Positions 31,647-31,814 of a stretch of 64,000 nt of DNA are shown here, one piece after another. Below the pieces are notes generated by a model. That model had not been told where the DNA came from. It ran no database searches and saw nothing but the letters and a program-made list of their open reading frames with translations. How positions within the stretch are numbered: the stretch's first letter is position 1; each line of letters opens with the position of its first letter. Location: sequence record LT603033.1; one strand, 5' to 3'. Both the position numbers and the translations under genes were made by a program.

Positions 31647-31814
31647 ATGAAAGATATTTTTACAATAGATGCTAACGTTATATATGATTTTTATCTTACT
31701 GGTGGTGTAAAGGTAACGGGTACTGTGATTGATGTTTGTGATAATGGTATAATCTTAAGTGATGGCACTAGAGTTGTCCAAACACACATCATTATGTTTA
31801 TCCCACATGTATAA
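31647..31814 (+). CDS. Hfq/Sm-like small protein (55 aa), not in the ORF track
   Basis: [55 protein letters not shown] aligns with the Hfq Sm1/Sm2 motifs; weak SD. Confidence 0.55.

Follow-up and report, generated by a model that had tools for sequence, protein, structure and literature searches.

An open reading frame (ORF) of 55 amino acids lies directly downstream of nrdB in a stretch of 64,000 nucleotides from sequence record LT603033.1 (hereafter the window; all positions are those of the window). The ORF, listed with an ATG start, occupies 31647..31814 on the + strand, stop codon included. Its product is probably a soluble, acidic, minimal protein of the Sm/Hfq fold, a very divergent and non-canonical derivative of Hfq that is carried by Rak2-like jumbo phages. 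The evidence comes from the conservation of the frame, from two structure predictions and from similarity to Hfq in one half of the protein. A first-pass annotation of the window had described an uncalled Hfq/Sm-like protein directly after the nrdB terminator; the ORF is present exactly there, and the protein sequence it quoted matches.

The window contains no N. Its region 30400-33300 is 100% identical to the Escherichia phages vB_Eco_slurp01, vB_EcoM_G17 and Sharanji, and 96.8-99.8% identical to PBECO4, 121Q and others. These phages and the other close matches belong to Asteriusvirus, Rak2-like jumbo myoviruses with genomes of ~350 kb. E. coli K-12 MG1655 supports the growth of Sharanji and slurp01 (PMC5114366).

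Conservation of the ORF

Full-length copies of the ORF were found by tblastn in 71 phage records, all with at least 80% query cover and down to 33% identity, and the frame is intact in every one of them (71/71). The phages that carry it belong to the genera Asteriusvirus, Alcyoneusvirus, Eneladusvirus and Mimasvirus, and their hosts are Escherichia, Klebsiella, Salmonella, Erwinia, Serratia, Yersinia, Pectobacterium, Cronobacter and Xanthomonas. In nine pairs with unsaturated synonymous divergence (dS), the Nei-Gojobori ratio of nonsynonymous to synonymous divergence (dN/dS) is 0.05-0.38. Lack of conservation had been named in the first-pass annotation as grounds for giving up its proposal; the 71 records and the purifying selection point the other way. 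Judged on these comparisons, the ORF is a genuine gene of Rak2-like jumbo phages that is under purifying selection. We take it to be a translated gene that would encode a soluble acidic protein.

A profile search that covered 1.84 billion representative proteins exhaustively returned 27 matches at E≤0.001. The credible matches among the 27 are all short proteins of the ORF's own family, and the family is for this reason regarded as confined to one phage lineage. Long matches in the same search (P0021, P0024, P0026, P0029, and P0030) are Sushi/Ig/LRR repeat proteins and were discarded as spurious. A search within the window for paralogues of the ORF and for a canonical Hfq found none; a hidden Markov model (HMM) of Hfq built for this analysis gave E=0.097 against the six-frame translation of the window.

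The ORF is not new to the databases. It had been called uncalled, which holds for slurp01, G17, RaK2, and the GenBank K64-1 record, where no feature is given. It is, however, annotated in 121Q (as gp34), PBECO4, UE-S1, Sharanji and many others, where the product is mostly given as "hypothetical" or "membrane protein." The window protein matches the HMM of PHROG 17251 ("membrane protein") over its full length with E=2.2e-31. The ORF is thus already in databases as PHROG 17251, and is not truly unknown.

Predicted Fold

AlphaFold2 modeled the window protein from an 8-sequence alignment with a mean predicted local distance difference test score (pLDDT) of 87.3 and a predicted template modeling score (pTM) of 0.68. 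In this model DSSP assigns strands to residues 12-17, 22-31, 34-37, 42-44, and 48-53, which would form a five-stranded beta-barrel core (residues 12-53, encoded at 31680..31805, + strand). Residues 1-11 are coil, with a mean pLDDT of ~65 over residues 1-10. The orthologue of Cronobacter phage GAP32, which is 36% identical, was modeled from a 22-sequence alignment with a pLDDT of 86.8; it has the same topology, and its residues 1-14 are coil. (L)Sm proteins have a conserved 3-10 turn in the loop between beta4 and beta5 (PMC4152361). Such a turn is found in the window-protein model at residues 45-47 (DSSP "HHH"), and in the GAP32 model at the equivalent place.

When the window-protein model was compared with the Protein Data Bank (PDB) by Foldseek, the best 50 matches were all Hfq chains, with E-values of 6e-3 to 1.5e-2, a probability of 1.00 and query template modeling (TM) scores of 0.70-0.80. 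The superpositions have a root mean square deviation (rmsd) of mostly 1.0-1.7 Å over 47-48 columns, with 23-31% identity. The best 50 matches of the GAP32 model were again all Hfq (E 1.5e-3 to 3.6e-3, 21-28% identity), and the TM-scores over both searches range from 0.60 to 0.80. The Sm/Hfq-like identity proposed in the first-pass annotation thus holds at the level of the fold, where two models from different orthologues and alignments have solely Hfq as their best 50 PDB matches. The models support the view that the protein has an Hfq-like fold. One detail is to be corrected: the N-terminal helix, described earlier as shortened, is wholly absent in both models.

In the viral structure library BFVD, the orthologue from phage CBB was the only significant match. 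Some unrelated small phage proteins also superpose (A0A1E1GEK3, and proteins of Gordonia phages Waits, VanLee, and GMA2 and of Shigella phage Sd1), with TM-scores of 0.63-0.83 and E-values of 0.015-0.044. Going by such models, small barrels like those of Hfq or Sm proteins may be common in phage proteins that have no assigned function.

Similarity to Hfq in Sequence

BLASTP against E. coli Hfq aligns residues 16-37 of the window protein with Hfq residues 25-45 (17.7 bits; E=0.008 for a single comparison), in the register that the first-pass annotation had given. Profiles were also compared. The Hfq profile had 88 sequences, itemized as 58 proteobacterial genes and 29 Bacillaceae proteins, and the family profile had 29 members. 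hhalign placed family residues 10-40 on Hfq residues 19-48 with a probability of 71% and P=3.7e-5. The score of 26.9 compares with 7.2 for the reversed family and with a mean of 10.0 and a maximum of 18.2 for 200 column shuffles, none of which (0/200) attained the real score. The alignment with Sm1 that had been read by eye is therefore beyond chance, BLASTP, hhalign and the shuffle controls being in agreement. The companion alignments with Sm2 and of KDIF with QDPF found no support from any sequence method: hhalign leaves the Sm2 region unaligned, and a global hhalign alignment across Sm2, with a probability of 2%, was not used. In a profile search of PDB sequences only sub-threshold matches appeared, with Hfq (E=0.6), IF1 (0.74) and the LSm domain of Edc3 (0.86) among the nine listed. 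Scans of Pfam, NCBIfam and PADLOC with the window protein and 15 orthologues gave nothing meaningful at E≤10.

On these alignments, the similarity to Hfq in the Sm1 region exceeds chance by a modest measure, and homology with Hfq, though likely, falls short of proof. Descent from Hfq, with much divergence, is the most likely origin of the family.

Residues Retained and Lost

The 29-member family alignment, from which the column counts below are taken, retains several residues of the Sm barrel. The Sm1 glycines of beta2 are kept at G20 (24/29) and G25 (27/29), and the turn residue N/D33 in 28/29; D32 is found in just 14/29. In beta5, Ile is kept at I48 (28/29) and Pro at P53 (18/29). The place of the N-terminal helix of Hfq is taken by a family-specific motif, D-I-F-[TS]-[FI]-D (residues 3-8, codons at 31653..31670, + strand), with D in 21/29, I or V in 28/29, and F in 26/29. 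The helix is inessential to the Sm fold (PMC3710371). One member of 49 amino acids, P0023, has no N-terminal DIF motif and is the sole basic member (isoelectric point, pI, 7.9); a mis-called start or a truncated copy is possible.

The residues with which Hfq binds RNA are not retained. The basic rim patch of Hfq (R16, R17, R19, and K47) is needed for annealing (PMC3753642). Its equivalents in the family are F/I, D/E, N/G/D, and D/G/N, respectively, and the rim arginines had rightly been reported as absent. The proximal uridine pocket (Q8, Q41, F42, K56, and H57) is lost as well: Q8 has no equivalent, F42 is replaced by an invariant Gly (29/29), and the K56 equivalent is Q/T or D/A/S. On the distal side, the A-R-N columns Y25 and K31 are variable (V10/T6/Y5... 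and Q9/K8/V3..., respectively), the window protein itself having Y16 and K22. The Sm2 motif [YF]-K-H-A-[IV] reads [PV]-[QT]-x-[KH]-I in the family, with no Tyr or Phe and no Lys at K56; the Ile is kept in 28/29. The pI is 4.05-5.0 in 28/29 members, whereas the E. coli Hfq core has 9.99; the net charge of 16 orthologues lies between -3 and -7, with 2-6 Lys+Arg per protein. Orthologues from Eneladusvirus and Mimasvirus have an acidic C-terminal [KQ]-[ND]-E-T tail, which the window protein does not have.

Because the RNA-binding residues are unconserved on the proximal, distal and rim surfaces and the family is acidic, a canonical role in small RNA (sRNA) regulation or as an RNA chaperone appears unlikely. 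The tests of membership that define Hfq as an RNA chaperone thus gave negative outcomes, and the protein is therefore filed as a stripped-down Sm/Hfq-fold variant and not as Hfq. Nearly all Sm proteins assemble as homo-oligomeric rings. A ring is probable here too, in which strand beta4 of one subunit would pair with beta5 of the next. The negative surface, together with the missing RNA-binding residues, suggests that the protein has a basic protein surface as its binding target and is not a chaperone of U-rich or A-rich RNA. The partner may be the strongly basic tail of the 77-amino-acid protein encoded next to the ORF, or a host nucleic-acid-binding protein.

Several observations weigh against this interpretation. 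Neither Pfam nor NCBIfam has an Hfq or LSM family that matches the window protein or any of the 15 orthologues at E≤10. The hhalign link is confined to the Sm1 half, and its probability is 71%, not >95%. The motif G-x-V-x-x-x-D-N-G-I-x-L-x-D-G also weakly matches other small barrels, for example a DUF5666/DUF1344 repeat protein. We read the match with that small-barrel repeat protein (P0025) as a caution: the beta2-beta3 motif is generic. The residues of the Sm2 region were mapped by strand register, not by structural alignment, and an alternative register puts position 47 (K/H/R in 22/29) at the place of H57, as a possible H57 mimic. The Foldseek E-values are just 1e-3 to 1e-2, which is modest because the domain is so short. 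AlphaFold2, trained on many Hfq structures and given shallow alignments (8 and 22 sequences), may have been pulled toward the Hfq fold; the structural and sequence evidence is therefore not fully independent.

Alternative Functions

One alternative is a genuine phage RNA-binding Sm ring, which would contact RNA of the phage or of the host by a surface other than the canonical ones. The predicted Sm fold agrees with such a role, as does a basic residue or His (K/H/R, 22/29) that lines the pore under one register. The charge of the family does not, there being so few Lys and Arg residues and a net negative charge in every orthologue counted, and conserved aromatic or basic residues are absent at all three Hfq RNA-binding surfaces. 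Cyanobacterial Hfq indicates that a protein can have the fold and yet no part in riboregulation (PMC4152361). We consider an RNA-binding ring unlikely.

A second group of models directs the protein against host Hfq. Hfq's own acidic C-terminal tip binds the basic surfaces of Hfq (PMC5606850), and it is this precedent that makes an anti-Hfq factor conceivable: an acidic, helix-less Sm ring or single subunit would either cap the basic faces with which host Hfq binds RNA or co-assemble with host Hfq, and would thereby switch off sRNA stress regulation while the jumbo phage infects. We hold this to be a rather doubtful proposition. To the extent of our knowledge, such a factor would be the first viral Hfq mimic used against Hfq. 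In the version that builds on the first-pass annotation, a poison subunit would co-assemble with host Hfq, or would otherwise block it, so that sRNA regulation is disabled during infection. The closest structures are indeed gamma-proteobacterial, host-like Hfq (rmsd 1.0-1.3 Å), all known hosts of the family have the conserved Hfq core, and a subunit devoid of F42, K56 and the rim arginines would strip RNA-binding pockets from a mixed ring. An acidic surface could also dock on the basic rim or proximal face, as the acidic tip of Hfq does (PMC5606850), and many orthologues have the acidic [KQ]-[ND]-E-T tail. The window protein itself, however, is without that tail. With no N-terminal helix, and with a beta3-beta4 hairpin that by strand register appears ~2 residues shorter than that of Hfq, the subunit may have a geometry that does not match the hexamer. 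Since the hexamers of Hfq are abundant and very stable, only newly made Hfq would be affected by co-assembly. We think the poison-subunit idea improbable.

The position of the gene suggests another role, that of an accessory subunit or adaptor that serves the phage ribonucleotide reductase or the cluster of nucleotide-metabolism genes, in which case the likeness to Hfq would be that of a generic small beta-barrel. The ORF is directly 3' of nrdB in every genome, within a nrdA-nrdB-...-MazG-DHFR block, and the small accessory gene yfaE has the same position after nrdB in E. coli. The gene order is that of one phage lineage, uniform throughout, and is for this reason inseparable from shared ancestry; in nearly all genomes a terminator also stands between nrdB and the ORF. 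No conserved Cys column was found in the 15- or 29-sequence alignments; a [2Fe-2S] ferredoxin of the YfaE type, with its four conserved Cys ligands, was rejected on this account. We know of no small-barrel accessory protein of ribonucleotide reductase, and give the accessory role little credence.

The remaining two explanations can be dealt with briefly. The product would be a small membrane protein if the PHROG 17251 label and the RefSeq product names were followed. A search of 16 orthologues found no transmembrane segment: the best 19-residue Kyte-Doolittle means are 0.37-1.52, and the best window always holds 1-5 charged residues. The confident prediction of an all-beta globular barrel also disagrees with the label, and a membrane protein is very improbable; the protein is probably a repurposed Sm-type module instead. 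A chance non-coding ORF in an AT-rich intergenic spacer, which the small size, the place between a terminator and a promoter, the weak Shine-Dalgarno element and the lack of annotation in several records could suggest, is effectively refuted by a dN/dS well under 1, by a frame kept in all 71 records down to 33% identity, and by a pattern of conserved residues that fits a folded barrel.

Genomic Context and Expression

The order nrdA-(homing endonuclease)-nrdB-ORF-77-amino-acid gene-virion protein gene (~125 amino acids)-MazG-like gene was found in the 13 genomes inspected and in three metagenomic contigs, those carrying the most divergent members of the family. The upstream neighbor in every relative is nrdB (30472..31596, + strand, stop at 31596), encoding the beta subunit of a class Ia ribonucleotide reductase. 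The nrdA and nrdB genes of the window are uninterrupted. Several relatives (L010, L011, L014, L016, and L103) have an ORF of 230-260 amino acids between nrdA and nrdB, which in GAP32 is annotated as an endonuclease. In fHe-Yen9-04, CMSTMSU and the metagenomic contig L106 (loci L004, L012, and L106), nrdB is split in two ORFs; nrdA of L106 has an intein-splicing Pfam match.

Between nrdB and the ORF is a hairpin that resembles an intrinsic terminator, with an 8-bp stem followed by a T-run (31609..31627, + strand). It was found by a terminator scan and is annotated by ARNOLD in G17 at -9.7 kcal/mol, two nearby terminators having -14.4 and -14.0; it is the weakest of the three annotated in this G17 region. 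The ATG of the ORF is 19 nucleotides past the hairpin. The place of the hairpin is kept across four genera (equivalents in L002-L016), and the stems differ wholly, yet always pair; examples are AGGGATTC/GAATCCCT, AAGGACGC/GCGTCCTT, and CAGGAGGC/GCCTCCT. The upstream regions of 14/14 orthologues have the nrdB stop, a pairing hairpin, a T-run and a GGAG, GGA, or GGG element, with the ATG 7-10 nucleotides on. In the window this Shine-Dalgarno-like element is just GGG (31636..31638, + strand), 8 nucleotides 5' of the ATG, and the weakness of the element noted in the first-pass annotation is borne out.

Downstream of the ORF, a promoter scan detected a sigma-70-like promoter with an extended -10 element (TTGGAA-18-TATAAT, 10/12 matches + TG; 31819..31848, + strand). 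This promoter serves the next gene, which leaves the ORF flanked by a terminator on its 5' side and a promoter on its 3' side. The TATAAT at 31640..31645 was rejected as the ORF's own promoter: it is too near the ATG for a translatable leader and is not conserved. Transcription of the ORF would most likely occur by read-through of the comparatively weak nrdB terminator.

The next gene encodes the co-conserved neighbor of 77 amino acids (PHROG 16437; 31877..32110, + strand, with the G17 start). The start at 31847 in the ORF listing is probably too early, since G17 annotates 31877. The gene is preceded by an extended -10 promoter of its own and by a GGAG Shine-Dalgarno element. It always follows the ORF and is more strongly conserved than it. 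In 14 orthologues the first 45 residues have a net charge of -3 to -9, and the tail has +11 to +15 and an invariant NRK end; an acidic N-terminal half is thus joined to a very basic C-terminal tail. No relative of this protein was found in the PDB. Between it and the MazG-like gene is the gene of a virion structural protein (PHROG 16130; 32112..32516, + strand), which is absent in Erwinia phage Hallingskeid and Escherichia phage EJP2, where the rest of the block is kept.

Relation to Known Sm-fold Proteins

Bacterial Hfq (Pfam PF17209; E. coli PDB 1HK9 and 4PNO) and the phage family share the predicted five-stranded bent beta-barrel, superposing within 1.0-1.7 Å over ~47 residues with 23-31% identity. 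They also share the Sm1 glycines, the Asp/Asn turn, the 3-10 turn between beta4 and beta5, and the conserved Ile and Pro in beta5. In contrast to Hfq, the family lacks the N-terminal helix that caps the proximal face, the YKHAI motif, the rim arginines and the long C-terminal domain. It has the invariant Gly for F42, does not conserve the equivalents of the distal Tyr and Lys, and has a pI of 4-5 compared with ~10 for the Hfq core. It is also missed by curated Hfq HMMs and occurs in phages only.

Cyanobacterial Hfq (Synechocystis, PDB 3HFO), a cellular protein likened here by description, keeps the N-terminal helix and forms hexamers. Its fold apparently serves outside riboregulation, and is a precedent for other uses of the fold (PMC4152361).

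Sm-like modules have been described in other phages and on mobile genetic elements. As summarized in PMC3710371, a virus-associated Sm-fold protein described in 2009 also has no N-terminal helix, and it indicates that Sm modules can be part of phage genomes and are capable of ring formation there; it differs in having a C-terminal helix and in coming from a different phage lineage. It was not among the PDB matches of the phage family at E≤10, nor among the best 50 of Foldseek. Mycobacteriophage Adephagia gp39 has been predicted to be "Hfq-like" (PMC11373665). Like the window protein it is a small phage protein of no assigned function whose likeness to Hfq comes only via structure prediction; it differs in that the phage is unrelated and its host is actinobacterial, and the two are likened by description. 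Hfq-like genes on Thermococcus plasmids (PMC3543421), in the account that PMC3710371 gives of them, are another case of Hfq-like modules on mobile genetic elements; they differ in being archaeal and often fused to a zinc finger, and are likened by description. Phage Sm-like modules thus have precedents, none with an assigned function.

A literature search for links between jumbo phages and Hfq, or for a phage-encoded Hfq in jumbo phages, found none, and the Sharanji paper has no transcriptome, proteome or mention of Hfq.

Significance

Few virus-encoded Sm proteins are known to us, and none with an established function. Several of the jumbo-phage genomes that carry the ORF are those of phage-therapy candidates. 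The present interpretation would correct a database label, "membrane protein" or "hypothetical protein," that has spread to dozens of jumbo-phage genomes. It would also define a stripped-down Sm/Hfq lineage that is limited to Rak2-like jumbo phages, has an acidic surface and is without both the helix and the RNA-binding residues. If the protein forms a ring with the bipolar 77-amino-acid neighbor, the two would be a new two-protein module. Should its partner be host Hfq or some other basic protein that binds nucleic acids, the phage protein would represent a host-takeover factor of a new type and could serve as a tool to perturb Hfq.
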